DNA from: Setoptus koraiensis
Lineage: Eukaryota; Animalia; Arthropoda
DNA length: 64,000 nt
Direction: 5' to 3'
NCBI GenBank assembly: GCA_048013815.1
Contig: CM106586.1
Coordinates: forward strand, 1,798,001-1,862,000
Below, piece by piece: positions 1-18,144 of the stretch; positions within the stretch are counted from its first letter, which is position 1; each line of letters opens with the position of its first letter. The position numbers were made by a program, and so were the translations under genes. The notes below the pieces were generated by a model. The model ran no database searches, was not told where the DNA came from, and saw only the letters and a list, made by a program, of their open reading frames with translations.

Positions 1-1041
1 ACCGAGAGTATCATAATGGCCTGTAAGGCATACCGTGATTACGCCAGAAAAGTCAAACATATTAAGGGCAAACTTGAGATTATCGCACCGGTCACAGCAC
101 ATGCCGCTTTCGAGAAAGCAGCTAATTTCCTTGATTGTAAAATTAAACATATACCCGTCGATAGAGTCACCTACAAAGTCGACATGAAGTTGTTTAAACG
201 AGCTATCAGTCCTAAAACTATGATGCTTGTTGGCTCGGCACCACAGTTTCCGCATGGAATCGTTGACCCAATATCCGCCATTGGCAAGCTTGGCCTAGAG
301 AGGGATATACCTGTTCATGTTGATGCTTGCCTGGGTGGTTTCTTATTGCCATTCATGAAGGAGGCCGGTTTTCAGCTTGATGAATCATTTGATCTTACTG
401 TTCCTGGAGTTACTAGCATATCAGCCGACACGCACAAGTACGGATATACACCAAAAGGTACCTCTGTTATCCTCTATCGCCATGAAAAATATTTACATCA
501 ACAATATTCCATACAGACTGATTGGCCCGGTGGAATTTATGCCTCACCCACAATGCCAGGAAGTAGACCCGGAGCTCTCATTGCGACCACATGGGCCTCA
601 CTAATTTACCACGGCCAGACTGGATATGTGGATGCTACAAAGAAGATTCTTACCACAGCTAAGTTCATTCGGGATGAATTGAGCCAAGTTCGGGGAATCA
701 GGTTACTGGGCAATCCTTTAGTTAGTGTTGTTTCGTTTGCCTCTGATGATTTTGATATTTACGTTATGAATGACCAGCTCAAGCAACTTGGATGGAACTT
801 GAATGCATTACAATTTCCTAGCGCCTTTCATTTATGCGTCACTTTAATGCACACCTCAAACAATGTCGCGAAAACTTTCGTCAGAGATGTCACGAATATC
901 GCTCGAACTCTGATGAACGGTCCCAAAGAGAAACCTACTGGCTCGGCAGCTATTTATGGCATGTCGCAAACTATTCCTGATCGTTCATTGGTTGCTCAAA
1001 TCGCGAGAAAGTATCTTGACGCTTGTTACGCATTGGAATAA
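1..1041 (+). CDS. Sply: Sphingosine-1-phosphate lyase, C-terminal part (5' end outside window)
   Basis: Frame open from base 1 (TESIIMACKAYRD). PLP-enzyme motifs HVDACLGGF and SADTHKYG (PLP lysine), plus WPGGIYASPTMPGSRPG. No introns in this kilobase. Confidence 0.96.
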   Translation, partial: TESIIMACKAYRDYARKVKHIKGKLEIIAPVTAHAAFEKAANFLDCKIKHIPVDRVTYKVDMKLFKRAISPKTMMLVGSAPQFPHGIVDPISAIGKLGLERDIPVHVDACLGGFLLPFMKEAGFQLDESFDLTVPGVTSISADTHKYGYTPKGTSVILYRHEKYLHQQYSIQTDWPGGIYASPTMPGSRPGALIATTWASLIYHGQTGYVDATKKILTTAKFIRDELSQVRGIRLLGNPLVSVVSFASDDFDIYVMNDQLKQLGWNLNALQFPSAFHLCVTLMHTSNNVAKTFVRDVTNIARTLMNGPKEKPTGSAAIYGMSQTIPDRSLVAQIARKYLDACYALE

Positions 1042-1692
1042 CGCTCCTTTACGCCAACTATATTGCTCCAGCATGTTTTTTACTTATCTGTTCACTTAAA
1101 GAAAATAAATAGACCGAATTAACAGCAACTTTACCTTTTTAAGTTTGATTGTCAGTCCCAGTGAGATTTGAAGCCGAACAAAAGAAGAGCTTTTTGATTG
1201 TCCGATGGCGTTGAGAACGTCAGAAGAGAATGAGTCAGGCGGGACATTTATTGTAATATCTTTTTGAGATTCGCGCATCTCGCTATGGGCAGTTATTGCC
1301 GCTTCTGTCCTTGCACCCCATGAACACGTGGAGATTGTAACGTTATTTTGTTGCAAAACGTATTCTAACAAGCGTAATCTTTACTGATGTTAGAATTGCG
1401 AAAAATTATTTGTTAAAAATCAGAATATCAGCCTCATTTTCATGTTTTATTATACAGCACCGATAGCCTAGTAAAATTAGGGGGTAAAAAAAATTGTTGT
1501 CATTATTGCAAAAATTTCAAAAAACGTGGGCTTAAGAATAGCGTATTCTTTCAGCTCTCAATCTGGAACGTTCAGAAAAGCTATAGTTTGTTCCATTTGG
1601 GTGTCTCCGAATAAGAAGTTTACCTTGTAAGCAAGTTAACTATGGCTACTCGACTGACCGGACAGTAAATCTCAAGCAGGACGTCGAATCCG

Positions 1693-2862
1693 ATGTATCA
1701 GATGCTCAACATATTATCAAGATCAACTTTAGGATTGGTAACAGGGCCATGGAGAGCACAGCAAGTGAGAACTACGATAAACATATCATCTTTATTTGCG
1801 GGGTCAAACGACCATAAATATATAGCCACACACGATGGTATGTTTCACTGTGATGAAGTTGCGGCGTGTTTCATGCTGAAACAATTGGACACCTTCCGAG
1901 ATCATGATTTAGTAAGAACAAGGGATCAAAGAATATTGGATTCCGCTGACATAGTTGTAGATGTCGGTGGAATATTTAATGGCCATAGCAGAAGATTTGA
2001 TCATCATCAGCGCAGTTTTCAATTGACGATCAGAGACTTTCATCCTGACATTAAGTCTACAAATCCCAACAAACCCATCCGGCTAAGTTCAGCCGGCCTC
2101 ATATATGCACATTATGGCAAAGACTTCATTGAACAAGTGCTCCATATGACAACAAATGATCTTGCTGATGAGGATAGTGGCAGCAATGGAAACAAGAGCA
2201 TTGATAAAAATATGTTGGACGCCATATTTATGCAATATTATAACACGTTCATGGAGGAAATAGATGCCATTGACAATGGAGTTGAGATGGTCGAAGGTGA
2301 AGACATTGTTTACAATTATAATATCTCCACTCATTTGGCAGCCAGAGTTCGCCGATTAAATAACCAGGAAGGATCAGCTGATGATCGACTCAAGCAATTT
2401 CATGTGGCCATGTCCATGGTGGGCTCGGAGATGATTGAATGCCTGAAACAGCTTGCCACATCATGGTGGCCCTCCTTGGATAGCATGAAAAGAAGTGTTT
2501 TGAATCGATTCAACGTGCATGAATCGGGAGCCATTGTGCGAATTTCGTCTGATACTGCTTGGAGAACTACAATATTTCAGGCGGAGGAACAGCTCTCGAT
2601 AGTGGGTCAAATCAAATATGTGATACTCAATAATCCTAACGATAGACCAAGGTGGCGAATAATTGCTGTGCCGGTCTCACCCAAGTCTATCACAAGTAGA
2701 TTACCATTGAAAGAGCTTTGGAGAGGACTGCATGGCGACGAGTTACGTGAAAAGTCTGGCATCTCAGACGCAGTCTTTGTGCACGCTTCGGGCTTCATCG
2801 GTGGCGCAACAAGCAAAGAGGGCTGTATCCAACTGGCTAGAAAAACCATCGACTCCGAGTGA
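1693..2862 (+). CDS. MYG1: MYG1 (UPF0160) exonuclease, intronless, with probable mitochondrial presequence
   Basis: IATHDGMFHCDEV, VRTRD, VVDVGGIF, FDHHQ, LSSAGLIYAHYG and FVHASGFIGG motifs. Arg/Ser/Thr-rich N-terminus. Confidence 0.95.
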   Translation: MYQMLNILSRSTLGLVTGPWRAQQVRTTINISSLFAGSNDHKYIATHDGMFHCDEVAACFMLKQLDTFRDHDLVRTRDQRILDSADIVVDVGGIFNGHSRRFDHHQRSFQLTIRDFHPDIKSTNPNKPIRLSSAGLIYAHYGKDFIEQVLHMTTNDLADEDSGSNGNKSIDKNMLDAIFMQYYNTFMEEIDAIDNGVEMVEGEDIVYNYNISTHLAARVRRLNNQEGSADDRLKQFHVAMSMVGSEMIECLKQLATSWWPSLDSMKRSVLNRFNVHESGAIVRISSDTAWRTTIFQAEEQLSIVGQIKYVILNNPNDRPRWRIIAVPVSPKSITSRLPLKELWRGLHGDELREKSGISDAVFVHASGFIGGATSKEGCIQLARKTIDSE

Positions 2863-5772
2863 CGAAGTAAACTCACGGGAGTGTTATTTCATACGCTTCT
2901 TATGTGGGCATGGTGTCACTAAATCGACATTGTTTGGCAGCAAATTAAAACTAAGCTCCCCTGTCTGAACTCTGTCGATTCAACAATTATTAAATAATCG
3001 ATCAATACATTTTTTATTAGGTATATTATGTATATTTACTGTCATAAAATAATCATTTTACACTTGTTACGATTTGTTTCAAGTACAACGGATGTTGTAA
3101 GGGTTTCAAGCGAATTAATCAACCGCAGGAAAATGCCATTTCCTTTGAGCCATTTGATCCTGATATCGGCTAAGATTCAATAGCCGCCCGTCCAGCTACT
3201 AGAATATTTGGAAATTCCTTTTCAACTCATGTTCTTGACTTATCCATTCTAGATTCAAATCGGAACTCTTTGAGGCTCAATGAGGCTAAAGCGGTTGTAT
3301 ATATAGCATTAAGGATTAGTTCGTCCACGTCTTTTATTTTAGGTTGATTCACATGTGTGAGAACATCTCTTTCATGTTCACCGCGATGTTCATCATTAAT
3401 GTGCCATTTCAAGGTATATCTGGCATGTTTTCGATTTGATCTCTTTTAACTCTACATATCTATATCTATTCTGGATCAATCTAATAAGTTCATCGTCATG
3501 ATTGCCGATGCAGAAGCAGCAACGGCAAAGAAGTAGAAGCCTTAGAATGGTCAAACATTGGCTGTGGCGCTGCCGGTGGCGCTAGTAATGGTCGCAAACA
3601 TGACCTCGATCACCTATAATTAAGCGGCAATGATGATCTGATTCGGAATTCCATTAAAAAATAAATATACACGCCAAATGACCAAATGTGTGTATGTGTG
3701 TTAAGAGAGAATTTCTAATTTGTTTTTTGATTGAAGCTATGATAATTATCGGTCAGCGGCGTCAGTAGCAACCGCTTTTGGCGCTACTAAATCACGACCT
3801 GAATTTGCGACTTTTTTGCAGTCACTTTTTTTTCACCGCTACTCCACAAGTGTCGAATTTCGCACAATTATTGGTATTAGTAGTAATTAGGTTCGGGTTC
3901 ACTTTGCTATCATGCCAGTAACTTGTTGGAGTTGTTTTGTCGCTGTTCTGTAGTTGTTTTGTGCGCCGCACGAAAACGGAAGTCGAAAATATAGATATGA
4001 GGCGGTCAGTTGGTGTGTCAGCCTGTGTGGCAGTTCCATTGTAATGAGGCTCTAGTTGGAAGGTGTTAATTAAGGCTTGCATCGAGGGTTCGAAGGTGGC
4101 CACACAAACAGAGTTCGTTTTTTTCTCTCTCTCTCTCTCTCTGTGCTAGTAATTCTGAGAAAAAAAGAAAGTGAGAGAGTATCAATCATTTGTGTGGACT
4201 AATCAATTTTGTTCTCTATCACTGTCGAACAGGCCCAGTTGTTTTCTTTTATTCTACTAAGTTTCAGTAAGTGTGTGTGTCGTTATTGAATGAATTTATG
4301 AGAGTGAGAGTGGCAATTTGAGTGAGCAGTGGACACGTTAGCGGACGTATCTGTAGTGTATATCTGAGCATGTCAGTGGATATGTCAGTTGATATGAATC
4401 ATCATTAGTCGTGCGAGCGAGAGAGTACGTGCAAAAAGACGAGCAAATCTATTTTTTGTTTCTCGGCATGGCCTGTTGCTCGTGTTGGTACGTGCAACGC
4501 AAATTATCATGGGCATTGTTTATCAGGGTGTGTGGTCACATCACATTTTTCAGTTTTTGCTGGTGCTAGAACACGAGTAACACGAGTGTAACAGCCCAAG
4601 TACCTGAGCTACTTCGGCTGTAAGAAAAGAAGAAGGTGAGAAGAGAAGAAAAGAAGCGGAGCCTCTTTCTCTGGCCACTGTCATAGTGCCACCACTACTA
4701 TGGTCAGCCGAGAGAGAGAGCGAGTTTTACCTGAGAGTGTGCAGTGATTAATAAAGATGTAGTCAATTGCAAAGTAGGCAGTTTGGCGCTCACATTTGTA
4801 TGCACTTGTGTACAGTACGAGGTGCCCTCAAGTTGATCATTTTGGTCAGTATTATAATAATTGAAGCTGAATTCTTCTTGTCTTCTCTATCTGATTATTG
4901 AATTGTTGCCTGCTCTTGGTACTTGCACGAGCTTCGGTGCCCCATCTATTAGGCTCATCACAATCATAATAATGAGCATCATTATTATAATGCTGATAGT
5001 CGCGCCGGTGGCCATATTTACCATTATTGGTCATTACCAGCTAACAAAAACAACAATAAGAGAACTCGCGAAAATCGATTATCGTTTGAGTAGTAGCAGT
5101 GGTAGTACATGTGTAACTGTCACTTTTTGTGTTGTCTGTTGCTTGTTTAAGTTGTTGGGCCGACTTGGGGAACGTGTCGAACACACACACACACCAAAGA
5201 ATAGAAGATAAAAAATAAAAAAGCGATACTTATAGAATATTTGTAAGTAACAACAATAGAGCAAGTTGTGTGCCATTGTGTTTGCGCGTGTTTGTAGTGG
5301 CGCTTGTGGTGGCTTCATTGGTGGCAACTGGACTATCACTTTATATAGAGACATATCAGCGACAACAATGGCATTCTCTGTCACTTCTGTTCGGCTGCTG
5401 ATCCTTATACTCGCACTGACACACCGAACCCTGCAAGTTCGAGCATTCGAACTTGGAAAGCAAGTGACACTAGTGGTACAAGTAGTGATCACTCACCAAC
5501 ATTATACTCCAACGCGTGTGTGTGTGTGTGTGTGCAAACAATGGGCTAATTTACCTGGCCGAGATTGACCAAACATCTCTGTTGTCGCTGCACACCCACA
5601 AACAACAACAGTGACAACAGTGCCAGCAGAGCATTAACAAAGTGTTTTACATGTCGACGTGCCCAAAGTGAATATCGCCATCGTCGGCTTGCATCGGTGT
5701 CCAGATAAAAAGTGTCGGGTCTGGGTCGTTTCACCGACGTACACTCCACTTTATGTGATCTTATACTATAAA

Positions 5773-6290
5773 AGCAGTGTTTATCAGCGATGTTGCCTCG
5801 CTCAAGCCGTTCGAATGACAGTTGCTACATAGTTGAAGCAGACTGCATCATATCTTCACCATTCATTCTAGCATTCAATAATAGATCTTCGGTAACTCGA
5901 AAAATCGAGTCGCACCTTCTCCAATGTGGCTACATCGACAAAACTAGCGTGGTCAACGTTGCCTCAGTTTCTACCAGTGCAACGATATTTTTTCCAAAGC
6001 CAGCCTCGAATTGCTCAAAACTTGTGAATTGCGACGCTTCTTGTCGCTATTGTTTCAATGCATCTTTCATGATATGATTATTGGCGACACTATGAGAGAA
6101 TGCCTAGAAATTAACATCTTCTCTCATAGTGATGAATGGAGGTATCTGTAACATTGCATTGTGCACGTATGAAATGTACGACCATGAAATAGTCGCTCTA
6201 CGGAACGTCCGTTCATCTGACTGTGCGCAGAGGAAGTTTACGAAAATGAAACTGAATGATACTCCGATGGAACGAGCGTGTCCAGAAAAG
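5773..6290 (+). repeat. Dispersed degenerate repeat, copy 1 (unclassified; homologous to 16541-17050 and partly to 10566-10716)
   Basis: Alignable by eye to 16541-17050 over ~500 bp (e.g. agcagtgtttatca, tcaagccgttc-aatgacagttgctacat, tcaaaacttgtgaa-tgcgacgct, tgaaatgtacgaccatg). Confidence 0.85.
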
Positions 6291-9042
6291 TGTCGACAGG
6301 TAAGGCACACACACACTGTCGCTGGCTACCAGTGTGCTCATCGGATCATCTGATTAGGATGTGGCCAATAGGTTGGGCCAGCGATTGCAATTGAGCTGTC
6401 AACAAGATAATGGTGACCATCATCATTAATGATTATCACAGTGGTGACACACAACAACGACAGCCACACAAAACGACACCCGATGTGCGATGTGCGATGC
6501 GCGATTTGCGACAAGAATAAATTGGTGTATGACAAAAACAAGAATGCTCACTAGTTGTACGAAGGTGCAGAGTCAACAAGGCGATAATTCTTTCTCTCGA
6601 ATGTGCTTGTTCGGTCGTTTCTCTCCATGGTGAGCAGCACTTTTTGTGGGCATCACAGCACACCAAACTGCTGCCACAGATACGCCAAAAGAGAGCATCT
6701 TTTGCCGGACTTTGCCGCTTCATGCTGACTGTGTGGCCCACAAAATAGGGCACCAGCACCAGGGGCGACCAATCATCGTCAAACGCCCCTGAACGAATCA
6801 CGAGCTGAATGAATGTTTCCCGAAACAGAACAGCAGACAGGAATTGGTTGCTTTTTCTTCTTTTCTTTTCTGCCCTCTGCTCTGTGTATTAGGCTCTGTG
6901 TATCTGTATTAGGCTGTTGTTGCAGCTAATGTGCTGCCGGCGACGCCGGTATGTAAATCGCCAGAACGGGGCCTACTTTCACGCTACGCTATTTTCTCGC
7001 GCCAATTGCACGCTGCTGCCAACGGACGGGCCAGCCAAGCAAAAAGCTGCTAATATTACAAAGATTCACAAAGATTCAATTTGGGTTCAAGTTGGAATTG
7101 AGCCATTGGAATATTGTCATCCGATTCGAATTGCCATTCGAATGCAACCAATGTTGCAGCCAATCGTTAGCGATTGTTACAATGGTGTGCCCATACACGG
7201 GACCATTTGTTTGTATTACTTCTGCTTCGATAGGCACGTACACGCGGTTGTTGCTGTGGCTGGCGGACGGTTTTTCAATGACATTCGCACACAGACAAAC
7301 AAACTGTGCAACAAGTTTGTATCAGGTTTTGGCCCCCGTCATGTTAGAAATTAGTTGTTTGTGGTTGTGTTCAGTGGGCCGATTGGGCCAAGTTGGGTGG
7401 CCGGCGAGCAAGGTGAGCAAGTCGTAAGACGCATATATAAACGGCTAATTTCTAACGCCACTCCGAGAAGCAATCCGAAAAATCTCACTGCGACACAAAC
7501 TTGGCCGAACAATGGAATACTCATAATGCGCATATTTTGCAACTATTTATAAATAAAACATTAAAATATGGTCTATATTATATGGAGCATCAATGTCATT
7601 GTTATTAGCGGCATTATTATTGCTATTATTATTATTATTATTATTATTACTATTATTGGCAGCATTATGGTTGTTATCGAAATGATAATGGCAAATAATA
7701 ATCATCGACGAATCTGCATTTGAAACAGGCCGGCGCTGTTCGCACCGTTAGAGATTCAATAATTTCGCCCAAATACACATGATTTGCACCACGATAATGA
7801 TAATGATGATGCGACTGAATGAACCATTAACAAACTCAAAAGCCGACTCAATGGCACCAGTCGAGATTAGCGGCAGCTACTCTAAAGGATTCTCTCTCAC
7901 TCCTCATACTTACACTGTATGATTAGTGTTTGTCCGTGTGTTAGCATATTTATACATTTCGGCCTGTATTTCATCAGCGTACACTTCACTTTATATGGCA
8001 CTTTATACCATGATACAAGTATATTTCATCGACACTATATTTCATTTAAAGTATTCATGATCAAAGCGTACATTTCATCGAACATTTCCAGATGAGCCAC
8101 TCGTAGCAGACAAAGAACAAAGCTTCCGTCATTTTTGAAAATATCTTTGATCTCGTTCCATTTGGTTTATCTCAGCGGCATGGTGTGTTGGAACTTGCAA
8201 GCTTCACCTGTGCTCTCGGCGCTAGTTACAATAACCTTTCTCTGTGAGTCCCATCAATGGACTGTCACCCGAGCTTTAGATCCAAAGATCAGCGAGTCAC
8301 TGTATATTATTTGTATGATTAGCACGTGTATGATTTAAGAGAGTTCACAGAGATGAATGTTGCAAATCGTTCAATCGAAATCGCATGTGAACTCCATCAC
8401 GTCAGCGAGCCGCTACAATCGGTCATTCATTCAGTCATCTCTTATAGGTGCCATGATAAATTCAATTTCAAGCACGAGCCAAGTCACTCTGTTGGTATTG
8501 TGGGCTTTGCGCGGCTTTCAGTTGTCATTATTTAGATCTGACCCATGTAAGAGACTCACCGGCATCATTGATCAATGCCAATAGTTCGTTTATAAATTAA
8601 TCGAATGCATCCTGGTGGGACAGCCATTGCGGCCACTGGACATGACATATCTGGATCGGCCCCAACCGCATATGAGACTGCCAACAATTTCCAATTGCGG
8701 GCCCCGAGTCACCCAATTCGACGAATGAAATGTTTTGGTCGTTGCTACTGCTACTGCTGCCAGAGCTCCCACAAGCTTGGGCCAAAAAAGAAAGTGCATC
8801 TATGCATGACAATCGATCGCGAGCCATCATGGTCTCAGAGAAACTGTTGGAAATGGCGCAATTAGTCAACACAGTGATAAATGTTATCTGCCTCAGATGC
8901 CAAGTCAACAGCGCGTCGACAGTGCCTTTGATACAGGTCATGGTCATCGAACGCTTCTTTGGGCTTCTTCGGGCTTCTTTTGGCGACGCATGCGCGTCAG
9001 GCTTCCTTCGCAAGTGTCAGCAAGAACATGCGCAAACATGCC

Positions 9043-9266
9043 GTGAGTGTGTGTGTGTCGGCTTCTTTTTCTCTTTCCTCTCGTTGCAGCTATTTAGTAG
9101 TATAGTCAATGTATAGACGAGCTACGTTCCAACTTGCGACTTGCAACTTCCAAGTTCGAAGCGGCGCACAAAAGAACGGCGAGCGAAGCAGCGACATCAC
9201 ATATAAGAACAACTAATCATCATATTCATGTCTCGGTGTATCTATGGGGTGATTTATTTATTTCAG
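9043..9266 (+). other. Probable 5' intron of the Wnt1 gene
   Basis: Consensus donor cc|GTGAGT at 9043. Acceptor atttatttatttCAG ending at 9266, 8 nt before the Wnt ATG at 9275. Confidence 0.55.
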
Positions 9267-9274
9267 GCATCATA

Positions 9275-12200
9275 ATGAAGATCTCACTTAGATTGTTTTT
9301 TGTTTTAGTGTTTGCGGCAACGAGCCTCTTTTTTGCAAATATAACACCGTCGCAGCAGCAACCACAGCAACCGCAACAACAAGCGTATCAAATGCATCAA
9401 ATGCAACCACAACAACAACAACTACAACAACTACACCAACAACAACCACATCAACAACACCAACAGCAACATCAACAACACCAACCACAACATCAACAAC
9501 CACAACAGCAACAGGTATCATTCACAAATCATCGACTGGACGAGTGGCGATTATTGGACAATGTGGCACGTGATTTGCACGATCTGACGGACAAACAGCG
9601 CCGCTTAATCAAGGAAAACCCCGGCAGTCAGATGGCCATTGTGCGCGCCATTAAGATGACCATCAACGAGTGCCAGTACCAGTTCAAGGACGACAAATGG
9701 AATTGTCCCATTTTCAATTACACAACTCGCACTCGTGATATATTTGGCAAGATTGTGCAACGGGGTTGTAGAGAGACGGGCTTCATTTATTCGCTGTTCA
9801 GCTCGGCCATAGCGCATTCGGTGGCAAAAGGTTGCACTGAGTCTATGATAACAAGTTGTGTTTGTGTCAACGACGATTCTTACTCCAATCACCACAATCA
9901 TCATCAGCATCACCAACGGCAGCAACAACAACAGCATTGCGGCGACAATATTGAGTTTGGCATTGAGTTTGCACGAGCTTTTTTGGCAAACGATGTTAGC
10001 AAATTCACCTCGCCGGCCACATCGCGCAACGACCTGATGCGCAAGAAGCCCACACAAAAACACCAAAAACGACAAAAACGACAAAAGCAACAACAGCAAC
10101 AACCCATTGAGCTGGAATTGATGACCAAAAAGGATCGAGAATTGCTCGCCATTATGAATGCCCACAATAGCGAACTCGGCCGCTCGGTAAGTCAATTATA
10201 TAATTAGTCGCTTTCGCTCTTTCTCTGTGTCTTTTCGTCCGCATCTACGAACACTTCACTTAATGTGATACTTTGAAGAAAGCTTTTTGTTATGTTCTCT
10301 TGACATGAAGAAACTCCAAATTATGGCTGGTGCCAAAAAACGGAACTAATTCAATTATCGTGAATGTTGTCGCATGCAACAATAGTCACCAACTACAGCC
10401 TAAGCTTACAGTGATCAGTTGTAATCAATCTTGCTAAAAACGTTTAACAGTCTATAAATGAAGGATCTTGATCCAAAATGGAAACTTCATGAAAACTTTA
10501 GAGTTGCCCTGTAAACATCGATGAGCATTGAATTTCTGCATTCGCGTAAATCGCTCGACATGCGGATTGCGACGCTTTGTGTTGCCCTATATTTCAATAC
10601 ATCTCTCATGATTATTGGCGACACTAAAGAGACGGCCCAGAAATCAACATTTTCTGCTCGTAGTATTTCTAACATTACATCATGCATTTATGAAATGTAC
10701 GCTGATGAAACGACCGATTCTTTTGCGTCCACGCTCGGCCACCTGTCGGCCTGTATAGCGAAAAAGAGAAGATTTCATTCATCTTTTGCACGTTCCATTG
10801 ATGTTTTTCGGCGATACAAAACAACGAACGCAATGAAATCTCAACTGACCGTTGCCATCTAAACTCGCCAGTGAGAACGGATGTCGTTGGCCCCTCGTCG
10901 TCGTTTTCAATGACTTTTGACGGCTGCTTTCGCTCAGAGAAATCACAGCCAGAAAAACGAAATGAAATGATTGGCTCAAAATGATTTTGCCTTCTACAGA
11001 GCAAGCACACACATTTCGAGTTGACGTGGCACGTAACGACTTGCGGATCTACGCCACTTGCAACTATTGTTGCTGTTGTTGTTATATAATAAGCGGTTGC
11101 ATAACAACACACTGTCGAGCACGATGGCCCATTATAGGTAGTTGTGCTGGCGATGCTGCCAATTTTACACGTAAGCGCAACATTTATGAGCGAGTTAAGC
11201 GACTAATTTGTTGGCTGTAATTGGAACAGTGGAAAATTGAGAAATATCGGCACGCCACTTACGGCCACAATGTCAAACGGTGTGTGTCGACGTAACTTGT
11301 TGGCTTTGCCCGTTGAATTATTTGTTCATGTCCAATTTCGTTGTTGCTGCTGTTGTGGTTGTTGTTGTCGTCGTTGCTGTTGTTGTTGTTGCCATGGAAA
11401 CAACATCCAAATAGTGTTTTCGGGCGCAAACATTCTTAAACACTCACAAACACGAACCAGCCAGCAACGTAAATAAATATAAACGACGCGAATTGCGACT
11501 TTTCACTTGCAAATGACTGCAAGGAGAATATTTTCAGCCACCAACAACAATTACAGATTGCGTGTTGATTTTATCGGCGACGACTTTCGATTTGTGCAAC
11601 CATCAACGTGAGACGCATAGAAACGCATCAGAAATGCTACTCAACCGAGATTGTGCCGGAGTTTTGTTGGCCGTGCGTTGGCATACGGCACACAAAGCGA
11701 GCCAAGACGCATTTGCATCCTATTGGCAAAATGAAAAGATGAAACGAGATTGTTATCAATTGAGAGAAGCGCTTATTTAGCGTTTTGTTGAACTGTTATT
11801 CAAACACATGGCTGCTCAAATGGCCAGTAGATACAATCATCATATTTATACATATATATATTTGCATTGCTCACACAGCAACCGATACTGGGCCGACGAA
11901 TGGCCCCAATGTGGTTGCGTGCCCAGTCGGCTCGTTCGAGTTACTGTTCGAGTGACGTTATCAGCGCAAATCATCTCTCATTGGCGAGCGGATTAGCTCA
12001 GCGGTGGCACCAATGACAGCAACCAGTGCACTATGATTGAGAGGCCAGCATGAGAGATGCATATTGAATTGATGGCCGACACAACTGTCAGAAGTGGCAA
12101 AATTGCCAATTTCCACGAGAAGAATCTGCGTTTGCGCTGTTGTTGCGGTTGACGTTGTTTATTTGTTTGTTTGTTTGTTTGTTTGTTTGCTTGTTTGTTT

Positions 12201-14123
12201 GTTTGTGCAATCTCGTTATCTAATTAATCTAATGTATTAGCAAAAGAATGAGCAGAGCGCGAGAGGCAGCCAAGAGACGGGGAGAGAGCGAGATAGCGAG
12301 AGAGCGAGAGATGCCAGAGAGACGAGAGACAGCACAAACGAGAGACGCAAGCGAATCCCCTTGGCGTCTTATCTCATTATGTCGACTGTGACGGGCAACA
12401 TGATGTTGAATTAATCCCACTCGTCATCGCAACAGTCGAATTGTCGTCGCTGGTTGCTGGCCGCGATTCCAATTTCCAGAAACAACCATAAACTTATCAT
12501 ACCTTTGCCATTACCCACCAATTTATGCCCTGCATTTAACCTGTTGTTGTCATCGTTGTTTGTCGTCGCTGTCGTTGGTGCCGTCGTCGTCGTCGTCGCG
12601 CTGGTTGTTTGACATTCTGCACAATGTTATGCACAATGTTGCCTGGCTCCCGTCGGCCGACAACGACGACGACGACGACAACAGCAGCAGCGACGACAAC
12701 GGCAGCAGTGGCAGTAGCAGCAACAGGTGAACAGGAGTATGTCGTTAAACTCATAAAAAACGAACCAACCAACCGGCCAGCTCGTTGTATCTCGTTTGCA
12801 TACTATTCAAACGACGGCCAGAGTATACGTGCCCACTAATCAACTGTTGCCACTGCTCGGCTAGACACTGAAACTTAACTCCACTTGCATTACATTTGTC
12901 AGTGTTGCTGTTGCCAGCCAATGGGCAGCAGCAGCAACAAGCGGCGAATGGCAAATGTTCGTACAAGCGGCCAGAGAGATAATCAAATTTAGAGAGAAGC
13001 GAAAATAGTTTCTGGCTTGTGCTTGTGCGTTTGTGTGTCCACATTTCAATTAATTTAGCTAATTCTTTGCATCATTGCGACTCGATTTGTTTGTGCCTTG
13101 GCTCTGTGAGACTCGCTGCTCGCCATTCTTTACCTGTTGCCCATAACAAACAAACAAACAAACCAACCAACGGACGGACAGACGAACGGACAAACGAACA
13201 GATTTGTTGTGGCATCCATTTGGCAGCCATTAGATACGCGAACAAGCGAATAAGCCAAGACTCGAGCTCAGCTGAGTGGCGCGATTCGCGGCCGAATGCT
13301 GGCCGGCCTATAATGGTCAACTGGTCAGGTGTCGGCGGTCAAGTGGTTAGCGAATGGACGCGGCCAGAGAGAGAGAGAGCGAGAGTGGAAGCGGCAAAAA
13401 GGGGCGTCAATCATCACACCTGGCGGCGAGTGGGCAAAGATAAAAGAGGAAAGATAATTTCTTTCTCTTCTCTTGTTTCTGTTGTCTTGTCGTTGGAACA
13501 CACACACTTCGCAACGGCAACAGCACGCTGTCGGTTCGGCCGCCGATTCGGCCACTTCGGTCAGTTCGGCCTGCTCAGCTGATTCAGCCGATTCGCCGAT
13601 TCGACGATTCGCCGATGAATTTTCGAGCCGACGATTCAATTGTGAATTATCAATGTTGTGCTGCTACAGGTTATTAGTGAAAGCTGAGCACGCAACAAAT
13701 CTGATGACTTCATTACCTGCAATCACCTGTATTATATTGTATTATACTGCATTGCACTGCATTACACTGCATCATGCTGCATCATGCTGCATCATGCTGC
13801 ATCATGCTGCATTATATTGCATTATATGGCACGGCAACAATGCTGCCATTATATGTATAAAAGTTGATAGCGGCGATACCAAACGAGCAAATGAGCAAAT
13901 GCTCAAATGGTGAGCCCATGATCATGCGCCATCGTCGGCCGCATCATTGCATATTGGGCCGGCACCATGCCGCCAGCAGCACAGGTAAGCGATGCGCACT
14001 TTCACTTCACCTGTATCGCCCGTAACTCGCCTCTACTCACCTGTGCTCACCTGTATCGGCCAGCGAGAGTGGGCGAGAGCACGCCTCTCGACCATGACAG
14101 CGAGCCTATATTTGTGCTGGCCG

Positions 14124-14187
<64 letters not shown>

Positions 14188-16273
14188 TGCGCCGAAGGAA
14201 GAAATTGAATTATCATAATGTCATAATAATAATAATAGTAATATAATAATATAATAATAACAATATAACAACATAATAGCATGTCGGCCGCCCAGCATGA
14301 CCACTGTTGTTGCTGCTGTTGCCTGATGTTGTTGTTGTTGTTGTCGTTGTTGCTGTTGTTGCCGCTGTTGCTGCTGGCCAGTGGTCGGTGGTCCGTGGTG
14401 CGTGTTGCCGTTCAGCCACCAACGAAGTTTGTGTTGGCCATACCAACAACCGGTCGTGATATATATCAGTCATAATCGTGAGAGCTCGCTCTTGTCGCTG
14501 CTCATCCATTAGTGGTGATCCGCGTTCCGACAAGCGTCAAAACACCCGCCACACAACGCCTAGAGACGGCCCACCGAACACCTACCCACCAGCACTGTCA
14601 TGTACTAGTAGTAGTCGGCCAGCCGACCACCAGAAATTCCGACAACGGCCAGCAGGTGAGCTCGAGTTCATTCTTTTTTTCGCTTTTCGTTTGCCTCTTG
14701 GCGCTGCCTGTGTGAGCAAGCAACAACCCGCTTGCAAGCTAAACAACAGCAACAGCAACAACAACGGCAACAGCAACATCAGCTAATTTAGCCATTGTGT
14801 GCCGCGCCGATGGTGTGGTCTCTCTGGTCGGCACACACACACACACACACGCACACCTGATGATATAAAGCCGGCCAATGAGTGAACACAATTAGCCAGC
14901 TATTTGTGCTCACCTTGATTCGCGCTGTCACTGTTTGCTCGCCCGCCTGCCTGCCTCTTCAAGCGCCTGCCAACAAAACCTAATTAACATTGATATGCTA
15001 ATTAGCGCCCCCTCCCCCTCCAATAACAACAATTATATTGTTAAGCTTATTAGCTTATTATGAGTGTTGTAGCAGACGACGACGAGCATCATTTAATTGT
15101 CCGTTTAACAATTGCAAGAGCCCGTGAGATTGGCCTCTGTACGTGTCCGCTATGCGCTAGCATCCAGCATCGTATAGTTTAGTGGTCGATGGGCCGTATA
15201 GCCACTATGCGGCCCATCGACAAACAGCGCGCCGGACAAAAGCGGCCATGACTTTGAATAACTTTTAACTTTCAACCTGTGACTTGTGACTGATAAACAC
15301 TGATGACACACACGAAAACTAATAAATACTCTCTCTGTGTTTGTCCGTTTCTCTCAATTGATCATGAACATGTGATGTTGCCGGCTGTAACTCCACTTTT
15401 GGTTTGTATGTTGGTCGCTTGTTTGTAAATGAACCACGTTACAGGTTGTTGACGATAGGAAGAAACTCAAATGCAAATGCCACGGAGTGTCAGGTGAGTG
15501 AGCTTGCGGACACGTTGTAAGGGTCGTCACGCAGATAATGATAATGATAATGATAATGATGATAATGTTCTCCTAACCAACCGAGAAACAAAACTAATCA
15601 AACAAAACAAACACAATCTCCCATGCCAAACAACGCACAGGCTCGTGCACGTTCGAAACCTGCTGGATGAGGTTGCCCGATTTTCGCGATGTCAGCAACA
15701 GGTTGCACGAGAAATACAATGATCCGCTGCGTATAGTGTCCATCTCTAGCAAACAATTGACAAGCAGCAACAACAACAATAAGAACAAGCGATCTCAGAG
15801 ACAAACATCATCATATAAGTATAACAACAACAATTTAATTGCCTACAATTCACATGGTGTCAAATTAAACAGAGCGCCCGCCAGAGACGATCTCGTCTAC
15901 TACGACGATTCGCCAGATTTCTGTATCGCCAACGACAGGTTCGACGTGAAAGGTAAGCACTCTCATATATTCATCATCATATATGTTTGTTTTTATTTGT
16001 ATTTATTTGCATATATCGCATGCAAATGATTATCGATAGACAACTGATCGTTTTTTTTATCATCTATTTACTATCTATTATTGACTAGGCACTCGCGGAA
16101 GGACGTGCAACGAGACGTCCACGGGCCCAGACAGTTGTGACAATCTCTGCTGCGGAAGGGGATACAAGACAGAGATCAGAGAGGAACGTTACAAATGCGA
16201 ATTTGAGTTAATATGGGTCAAACCAAAATTTAAATGGTGCAGTCGTAAAAAGACTACACACTCTTGTCTATAG
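9275..16273 (+). CDS. wg: Wnt1/wingless ortholog, ~485 aa; coding exons 9275-10186, 15445-15493, 15641-15952, 16089-16273
   Basis: Signal peptide [21 protein letters not shown]. Wnt1-type [89 protein letters not shown] and CCGRGY. All junctions are GT-AG with compatible phases (0,1,1). Confidence 0.93.
10566..10716 (+). repeat. Dispersed degenerate repeat, partial copy in Wnt1 intron
   Basis: Shares gcgacgct, tttcaat..atct.tcatg, attattggcgacacta.agag and tatgaaatgtacg with the 5773-6290 copy. Confidence 0.65.
13731..13830. repeat. 10-bp tandem array (consensus atyatrctgc), 10 units, 4 of them identical (atcatgctgc)
   Basis: Read directly from the sequence; units fall in exact 10-base register. 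Confidence 0.9.
14127..14186. repeat. (TG)30 microsatellite
   Basis: Perfect dinucleotide run of 60 bp. Confidence 0.98.
15185..15221. other. GC-rich inverted repeat / hairpin (17-bp stem, 3-nt loop) in Wnt1 intron
   Basis: gtcgatgggccgtatag-cca-ctatgcggcccatcgac. Arms are complementary except for one G-T pair. Confidence 0.85.
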
Positions 16274-16540
16274 GAACACACTTGTACAAAAAATTGTAAA
16301 CAATAAACAAGCAATCTTGATATCATTTTATACACAATCACTATCAAAAATCTCCATACAATCGATTAAGCCATTCCTTTTTCATCGCATCCGAACGGCT
16401 TACAACTTTCAGGCAGATGTCACTTTTGTGCCGTCTAGATGGCTATTATAACGAGATCATATGGGCAAAGACGAGCTAAAATAACCGGAGCTTTCATTTG
16501 ATGAGCTCGAGGCGGTTCGTGAGAAATTTCTAGAGTGGGT

Positions 16541-17391: not shown

Positions 17392-18144
17392 ATGAAGTTC
17401 ATCGACGTTATCGGTGTAGCCGTTATAGCTATTTCATTGTTTATAAGTTACACGCACCCAATCGGAGCAGAGCCAAGGGAACTTACTTTTCATATGCAAA
17501 TAAAAGAGATAAATGTCGCAATAGAAAAATGGTTCAACGAAGAATCGAATGTCGGAAATGCGACCATGGCTTTGTTCGGTATATCTAGCGAAGCTCATCG
17601 TCAAAGTAAGGCCAATCATTGGCCCAGACAAATGATGCGAGTATTGCAAGTTGCCACTGGAGTGTCCCCGTCGGACCAGATAGATATAGCAAGCATGCAT
17701 CTTGTTGTTGCTGGCTTGAAGTACAATGATGAAGCAACAAAGCAAGTGTTTCTTTCTCGATTTGAGAGGTTCTTGGAAACAAAATACCCATTTTTGGATG
17801 CGAATAATGCGCTACAAAAAAGAAAAGTGTTTTATAAACAAGTGGATGAACTGTGTGATCCTTACAAGGCAACAACTAAAAGAAAATACAACTTCTATGG
17901 TGCCATCCAATGGCTGCTCCAAGCGAAAGCATTCGAATATTTAAACGATAGAGAATTTATCAGTTCTGTTTCTCATACTGATGAACCCATTTCTCAATTA
18001 TATGCTGCTGCAATGGTTTGTCATTTCATTCGGTCTATGAGAGTGTACAACAGTAAAGGAGATAAGAACTTTGAGTTATATTTGCCAAGTTTTAGCGCTG
18101 ACGAGGTCTCTGGCTGGCCTTATGCACCCTTTGATAATCAATAA
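17392..18144 (+). CDS. Intronless secreted protein of unknown function, 250 aa
   Basis: Long ATG-started ORF with non-repetitive composition. Signal peptide MKFIDVIGVAVIAISLFISYTHPIGA. Flanked by TATA box and AATAAA. No family motif recognised. Confidence 0.85.
   Translation: MKFIDVIGVAVIAISLFISYTHPIGAEPRELTFHMQIKEINVAIEKWFNEESNVGNATMALFGISSEAHRQSKANHWPRQMMRVLQVATGVSPSDQIDIASMHLVVAGLKYNDEATKQVFLSRFERFLETKYPFLDANNALQKRKVFYKQVDELCDPYKATTKRKYNFYGAIQWLLQAKAFEYLNDREFISSVSHTDEPISQLYAAAMVCHFIRSMRVYNSKGDKNFELYLPSFSADEVSGWPYAPFDNQ

Follow-up and report, generated by a model that had tools for sequence, protein, structure and literature searches.

Described Wnt1/wingless proteins (PF00110) have 22–24 cysteines, a WxWGGCSDN motif and a C-terminal "index finger" hairpin with three disulfides, one of which is a vicinal bond at the tip; the remaining four finger cysteines we take, from the XWnt8 and Wnt3 structures, to be bonded across the strands as an outer and an inner pair. 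Cysteines of the finger are regarded as almost invariant and as structurally essential for site 2 of the Wnt-Frizzled contact, and Wnt mutants that lose a single cysteine are known to oligomerise. Here we describe a Wnt1/wingless gene in which two of the three finger disulfides are gone. It lies in a 64,000 nucleotide stretch of Setoptus koraiensis DNA (GenBank assembly GCA_048013815.1, contig CM106586.1, positions 1,798,001 to 1,862,000, forward strand), which was analysed as a whole and is called the window below; all coordinates are window positions.

The finger has been studied most directly in Wnt3a, where the vicinal bond C334-C335 induces a tight turn and site 2 involves F331, W333, C335 and V337 (Kumar et al. 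2014, PMC4068752). The window protein is like other Wnt1/wingless proteins in its Wnt1-type motifs (including the C-terminal CL), its acyl-serine hairpin and its wingless-type linker insert, and unlike them in its finger disulfides, its cysteine count and its lack of WxWGGCSDN, for which it has a Gln run and HCGDN; it also carries long Q/H/K-rich inserts.

The Wnt1 gene and its index finger

The gene is on the + strand and has four exons with canonical GT..AG borders (9275-10186, 15445-15493, 15641-15952 and 16089-16273), which together give 1458 coding nucleotides and a protein of 485 amino acids with 19 cysteines. The index-finger hairpin is encoded at 16196-16240 (+) in the last exon, where the fifteen codons are TGC GAA TTT GAG TTA ATA TGG GTC AAA CCA AAA TTT AAA TGG TGC. 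The last exon aligns end to end and with a single gap to the Wnt3 (6ahy) and Wnt3a chains in HMMER, the finger pairing as K-C-E-F-E-L-I-W-V-(gap)-K-P-K-F-K-W-C against K-C-H-C-I-F-H-W-C-C-Y-V-S-C-Q-E-C, and three MAFFT alignments concur. C461 and C475, the first and last finger cysteines, are retained as the outer pair; also kept are the tip Trp, the CC of CCGRG and the terminal Cys. F463 (TTT, 16202-16204) stands at the second Cys of CxC, which is Cys329 of Wnt3/3a, and F472 (TTT, 16229-16231) at Cys339, opposite F463 in the predicted hairpin register; V468-K469-P470 (16217-16225) places a Val and a one-residue gap where the vicinal CC should be, with the Pro at Val337 of Wnt3a. Of the usual three finger disulfides only the outer one, C461/C475, remains. 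The four cysteines missing relative to the 22–24 of the family are those of the inner and vicinal finger pairs, and the remainder align, so that all 11 cysteines of the N-terminal domain and 8 of the 12 of the C-terminal domain are present. A first-pass annotation made from the letters of the window had described this pattern (Phe/Phe, both TTT, for one pair; a one-residue deletion at the replaced vicinal CC; outer pair, terminal Cys and tip Trp retained; 19 Cys), together with preserved spacings (10 residues between CCGRGY and the first finger Cys, 8 between the last one and CL), and the 485 amino acid model and the alignments bear out each of these details.

Exon 1 (9275-10186) encodes the Wnt N-terminal domain, preceded by a signal-peptide-like start and a Q/H-rich tract, and ends in a 10-residue segment at a GTAAGT donor. 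It lies within a 368-codon open stretch (9101-10204) and is an intact frame of 304 codons, in phase with exon 2 and with the canonical 10-residue spacing to CKCHG; it is assigned from this open frame and its Wnt1-type motifs (26 protein letters), and the exon 1-2 junction is predicted. A scan for Wnt motifs in all frames placed CKCHG at 15472 and CCGRG at 16148. Exon 2 (15445-15493) is only 49 nucleotides long and supplies 16 residues and the opening base of the Gly codon that follows, and the acylation motif C-K-C-H-G-x-S-G-S-C is present as ten residues spanning the exon 2/3 junction, with the codon of the acylated serine, S320, at 15490-15492 in exon 2. The acylated-Ser motif is thus intact as first annotated; acylation itself is predicted. 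Exon 3 (15641-15952) encodes an 18-residue leading segment, the wingless-type low-complexity linker and a closing 12-residue segment. The last exon (16089-16273) is preceded by a TAG acceptor, encodes the C-terminal domain with CCGRGY, the remodelled finger and CL, and ends TGT CTA TAG at 16273; an AATAAA polyadenylation-type signal follows at 16302-16307 (+), 29 nucleotides past the stop codon. Exons 3 and 4 both match the Pfam wnt family (E=1.6e-15 and E=9.6e-13, the latter with 48.7 bits against a cut-off of 20.3), and the PDB matches of the last exon are Wnt5a, Wnt3, Wnt3a and Wnt7a. The open reading frame (ORF) of exon 3 found no relative in a homologous-protein search. The N-terminus is hydrophobic; secretion and signalling through Frizzled and LRP/Arrow are predicted.

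AlphaFold2 was given the 60 residues of the last exon with 33 homologous tails, and returned a hairpin at fragment residues 25-41 / 44-59 with its turn at W467-V468 and a predicted local distance difference test score (pLDDT) of 88.4. In this register F463 and F472 are directly opposite each other, since their fragment positions (38 and 47) have the same sum as those of the turn (42 and 43). The best Foldseek matches of the model are the Wnt3 C-terminal domain in 6ahy (query-normalised template modelling score, TMq, 0.80-0.82; root mean square deviation 1.7-2.1). The model made from the single sequence is poor, though still a hairpin, with the turn one residue earlier, and the modelling as a whole permits the finger fold without deciding the matter.

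Relationships and source lineage

When the last exon was searched with phmmer against 1.84 billion representative proteins, the best match, at 65% identity over the exon, was Wnt-1 of the eriophyoid mite Fragariocoptes setiger (P0001). In a tree of 42 Wnt sequences (IQ-TREE, quick search) the window protein has a long branch (0.85) and falls within a Wnt1 clade of 21 sequences that has a Shimodaira-Hasegawa-like approximate likelihood ratio (SH-aLRT) support of 99, and whose sister Wnt6 clade also has 99. The gene is thus placed by its sequence as a Wnt1/wingless orthologue, apart from Wnt6, Wnt5 and Wnt2, in agreement with the initial identification. Within the Wnt1 clade, a subclade of seven (support 98) unites the window protein with P0001 and with P0004, P0029, P0031, P0038 and P0039, five proteins encoded on compact, intron-poor contigs. 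Judging by its nearest named relative, the source lineage is most likely a mite of the eriophyoid (gall or rust mite) group.

Fragariocoptes Wnt-1 and these five relatives share with the window protein the motif KTEIREE-x-Y-x-C and the SRK..HSCL tail, and differ from it in having the canonical C-x-C...CC...C-x-x-C finger, with Phe or Tyr rather than Trp as the tip aromatic residue. They also lack the intron at 15953-16088 that splits DVKG|TRGR in the window: in Fragariocoptes and the relatives (loci L001, 5823-6140, L002 and L003) the whole C-terminal half is in one open frame, so that this intron has been either gained in the window lineage or lost in theirs.

The finger is not the only unusual part of the protein. 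At 9905-9945 (amino acids 211-224) D-W-x-W-G-G-C-S-D-N, a motif found in nearly all Wnts, is replaced by a 14-residue run in which both Trp and both Gly are lost and the Cys is kept. The whole protein is fast-evolving, with the finger its most striking but not its sole departure.

Origin and narrowness of the cysteine loss

The finger is homologous codon by codon to the Fragariocoptes DNA, from which it differs by point substitutions. From Fragariocoptes to the window, TGT has become TTT twice, GTG has become GAG, TTC TTA, AAA ATA and TAT TGG; one codon is deleted, and CTC has become CCA and GAG AAA. A frameshift or compensated-frameshift origin was considered and rejected, since the other frames of the window and Fragariocoptes DNA give stops and no resemblance while the codon-wise alignment works; the first-pass annotation had reached the same view from the flanking spacing. 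Identity to Fragariocoptes is 3/14 in the finger interior and 34/45 in the rest of the last exon, which indicates that the tip was remodelled much faster than its surroundings. The two identical Cys-to-Phe changes, at partner positions 27 nucleotides apart, would fit compensation.

The canonical pattern C-x-C-x-F-x-[WFY]-C-C-x-x-x-C-x-x-C is present in P0001, in its five relatives and in six metagenome loci, and a metagenome scan returned only canonical, more distant Wnts. Among 195 fetched Wnt tails, 177 have the full nine cysteines after CCGRG, and most of the lower counts are ORFs that run into introns. Since all retrieved relatives are canonical, the loss is recent and narrow and derived on the window's own branch; it is not a change already spread over a broad clade, which the first annotators had named as an outcome that would undo their proposal.

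Three proteins, P0002, P0012 (from the ostracod Notodromas monacha) and P0133, lack the vicinal CC alone; they are like the window protein in that the tip disulfide has been lost naturally and as a complete pair, and unlike it in that they keep the inner pair and belong to other subfamilies or taxa. The closest parallel is a Wnt of the sponge Oscarella pearsei (P0082), in which the same four finger cysteines are gone, the outer pair and terminal Cys are kept, and the turn is Lys-Pro-Pro where the window protein has Lys-Pro. P0082, unlike the window protein, is not a Wnt1 orthologue, has 16 rather than 13 residues between its outer cysteines and is without the Phe/Phe pair, and its four-cysteine loss is independent of that in the window lineage. 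A convergent precedent thus exists outside Bilateria, and none was found among the Wnt1 orthologues retrieved. Literature searches for eriophyoid Wnts or for natural loss of finger cysteines found nothing relevant.

Transcription, sister species and selection

All sampled 31-mers of 15400-16400 and of 15641-16330 (100%) are present in three sequencing runs from other samples, X1, X2 and X4, and a contig from X4 has 0 differences from the window over 15573-16500. Run X7 is RNA-like: missing from its contigs are 15494-15640 and 15953-16088, each bounded by GT..AG, which are precisely predicted introns 2 and 3, giving splice joints at 15493/15641 and 15952/16089, and one contig spans 16087-16246, including the finger, with 0 differences. 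Run X8 is likewise RNA-like by its spliced contigs. Because the X7 contigs use introns 2 and 3 and read through the finger, the finger without its four cysteines is transcribed and spliced as predicted. Every frame of the 64-kb window was searched for another last exon of the canonical kind (WCC, CxCxFxW or like motifs) and none was found, and there is no second Wnt within the window.

A sister species is represented by run X12 (organism E), whose contigs align to the window at 90-95%. Its exon 2 differs at 2/49 positions and its exon 3 at up to 18/326 with in-frame indels only (-6, +3), and over exon 4 and the 3' untranslated region (16084-16329) 13/246 positions differ (5.3%), the sole gap being 2 nucleotides in the untranslated region, so that coding exon 4 has no indel. 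The contig is alignable to 16329 and divergent beyond. The 3' end of intron 1 is about 20% different and much gapped, and in place of introns 2 and 3 stands sequence that does not align; exons are thus 4-5% diverged against about 20% in alignable intron. The proportions of synonymous and non-synonymous differences are pS 0.107 and pN 0.022 (pN/pS 0.21; Nei-Gojobori, exon 2 and exon 3 to 15895), values that are based on small numbers. From the exon-intron comparison and the pN/pS of exons 2-3 the gene, including its last exon, is under purifying selection, and the early concern that it might be unexpressed or neutral is answered by these values and the spliced X7 contigs.

In organism E the tally by kind (55 changes) has T>G and G>T only where the changes are listed, and neither TTT codon nor the GTC can thus have become a Cys codon there. 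By this tally and the absence of an insertion, organism E shares the shortened finger without the four cysteines, and the lack of any indel or Cys-recreating change argues that the remodelled finger has been kept by selection.

Other features of the locus

A Q/H-rich tract of about 55 residues follows the signal-peptide-like start (within 9350-9515), and a 20-residue K/Q-rich insert precedes the MNxHN motif (10040-10105). These tracts swamped a word-based protein search with exon 1, which returned no match. Intron 1 contains a long (GT)n microsatellite at 14118-14188, flanked by CTG/CAA-type simple repeats (~14290-14380). A low-depth contig from run X10, labelled organism D and identical to the window, covers 15940-16063 and at 16063, within intron 3, joins back to 15093 and onward across a 5-nucleotide ATCAT microhomology; the junction could be a chimeric read or that of a ~970-bp tandem duplication. 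Downstream, 1.1 kb 3' of the Wnt stop codon, is a single-exon ORF of 250 amino acids (17392-18144), whose exact sequence is not in a collection of 15 billion proteins.

Interpretation

We regard it as probable that the gene encodes a working Wnt1 ligand whose finger relies on one disulfide, a Phe-Phe pair and a Pro turn for its shape and has a hydrophobic tip, L-I-W-V. In a recent and narrow lineage, point substitutions have rebuilt the tip of the Frizzled-binding index finger, the inner cross-strand disulfide giving way to the Phe-Phe pair and the vicinal Cys-Cys turn to a one-residue-shorter turn with Val-Lys-Pro, while the outer disulfide, the Leu-Ile-Trp-Val tip and two bonds anchoring the C-terminal domain at its base were retained. 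The protein would still be secreted, be lipidated on its intact thumb serine and bind the Frizzled cysteine-rich domain with thumb and finger, and its hairpin would fold with one disulfide, aromatic packing and a Pro turn in place of three disulfides. The first-pass annotation had argued for selected remodelling rather than decay, mainly from the exact pairing of the lost cysteines. Its conclusion gains from transcription, splicing, retention in the sister species and the pN/pS of exons 2-3; its argument from pairing is the part that has weakened, because in a set of nested bonds any rebuilding of the interior removes whole pairs, and the speed at which the rest of the protein evolves also takes away from it. 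The co-evolved Frizzled site 2 that the annotation put forward, and its other suggestion of a site-1-only ligand serving as a partial agonist or antagonist, are conjectures.

This last point is one of several that weigh against a working ligand. Of the 144 columns that are at least 92% conserved among 13 Wnt1 orthologues from ticks to fish, 55 are altered in the window protein, and with divergence this strong across the whole protein the finger may plausibly be under relaxed constraint. Reporter signalling by mouse Wnt3a is abolished by C335A and by bulky or charged residues in place of V337 (PMC4068752). The engineered Wnt3a site-2 mutants of that study (Kumar et al. 2014) are like the window finger in being altered at the C335, V337, F331 and W333 positions, and unlike it in being single laboratory substitutions that leave an unpaired Cys, of which C335A and V337R lose reporter activity. 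The AlphaFold2 hairpin is for the most part a product of the canonical Wnts it was aligned with, pLDDT being 54 from the single sequence; the state of the finger in organism E comes from change tallies and not from a letter by letter reading; and RNA depth is low (3.5-4.8). Alternatively, site 2 may be functionally degraded: the finger would have been released from constraint in a miniaturised, fast-evolving mite, leaving a ligand that depends chiefly on its lipid thumb (site 1) and on co-receptors and behaves as a weak agonist or competitive antagonist. That the cysteines went in pairs would then reflect no more than the harm done by unpaired thiols. The excess of change in the finger interior over its flanks and the global divergence, including the loss of WxWGGC, are in keeping with this, as is the finding that Wnt3a site-2 mutants have lowered reporter signalling and largely intact activity in vivo (PMC4068752), and paired loss would follow automatically from the nested topology. 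Against it, the hydrophobic tip is kept with its Trp, the finger of organism E shows neither an indel nor a change back to Cys at an intron divergence of ~20%, and identical Cys-to-Phe changes at opposing positions look compensatory, not random. We therefore rank degradation of site 2 as less likely than a working ligand, and rather unlikely in itself.

Transcript structure gives a further ground for doubt. The one transcript contig to extend past exon 2 on its 5' side (X7 record 15) joins it not to exon 1 but to an upstream exon (14511-14655, +, 5' limit undefined) with a CAG|GTGAGC donor at 14655; it carries 145 nucleotides upstream of exon 2, the last 30 letters of which map to 14623-14652 with two mismatches. 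(X7 differs from the window at 2/30 positions at this exon end and at 1/~549 over exons 2-4.) Use of this exon would insert residues in frame or else leave the transcript lacking the N-terminal domain. Read in the exon 2 frame, it is open back to 14485 and has no ATG after its last stop, as would be expected if the locus no longer made a full Wnt, its transcripts beginning at or including the exon that ends at 14655 and lacking the signal peptide and N-terminal domain, and the finger changes being tolerated in a non-coding or truncated product. We think this improbable, since exon 1 is an intact 304 codons with all the cysteines of its domain, a perfect GTAAGT donor and the phase of exon 2, and since exons 2-3 have the low pN/pS given above and in-frame indels only; in-frame acceptors at 14485 and 14593 mean moreover that the extra exon could be a cassette. 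As a cassette it would put 57 or 21 residues in front of CKCHG; it may also be an alternative 5' exon that is non-coding, or an intermediate of splicing. We consider it scarcely credible that the finger arose through an error of assembly or sequencing, or that the last exon is mis-called, given that all sampled 31-mers recur in three runs from samples other than the probable source, that the X4 contig is identical, that spliced RNA-type contigs use precisely this last exon and that the window has no other Wnt C-terminus.

Laboratory mutants of single finger cysteines lose reporter activity, and a natural Wnt1 that is expressed and maintained by selection without four of them is a test of how far Wnts need these disulfides. 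The window protein and its canonical Fragariocoptes relative are a ready-made pair of constructs with which the role of the disulfides in folding, in WLS-dependent secretion and in Frizzled binding could be compared, and the Phe/Phe pair and Pro turn may serve as a design hint for disulfide-poor Wnt C-terminal domains or mini-Wnts. If the finger merely reflects relaxed constraint in a degenerate lineage its significance would be modest; the gene also marks the extent to which central ligands of development can drift in mites that are miniaturised and evolve fast. Speculatively, and with considerable doubt on our part, a bilaterian Wnt1/wingless may here be doing its developmental job with one third of its finger disulfides by means of a Phe-Phe pair and a Pro turn, perhaps within a broader dismantling, across the eriophyoid mite lineage, of the disulfide scaffolds of secreted morphogens, which, if true, would imply a changed regime of oxidative folding or receptor recognition in these animals.

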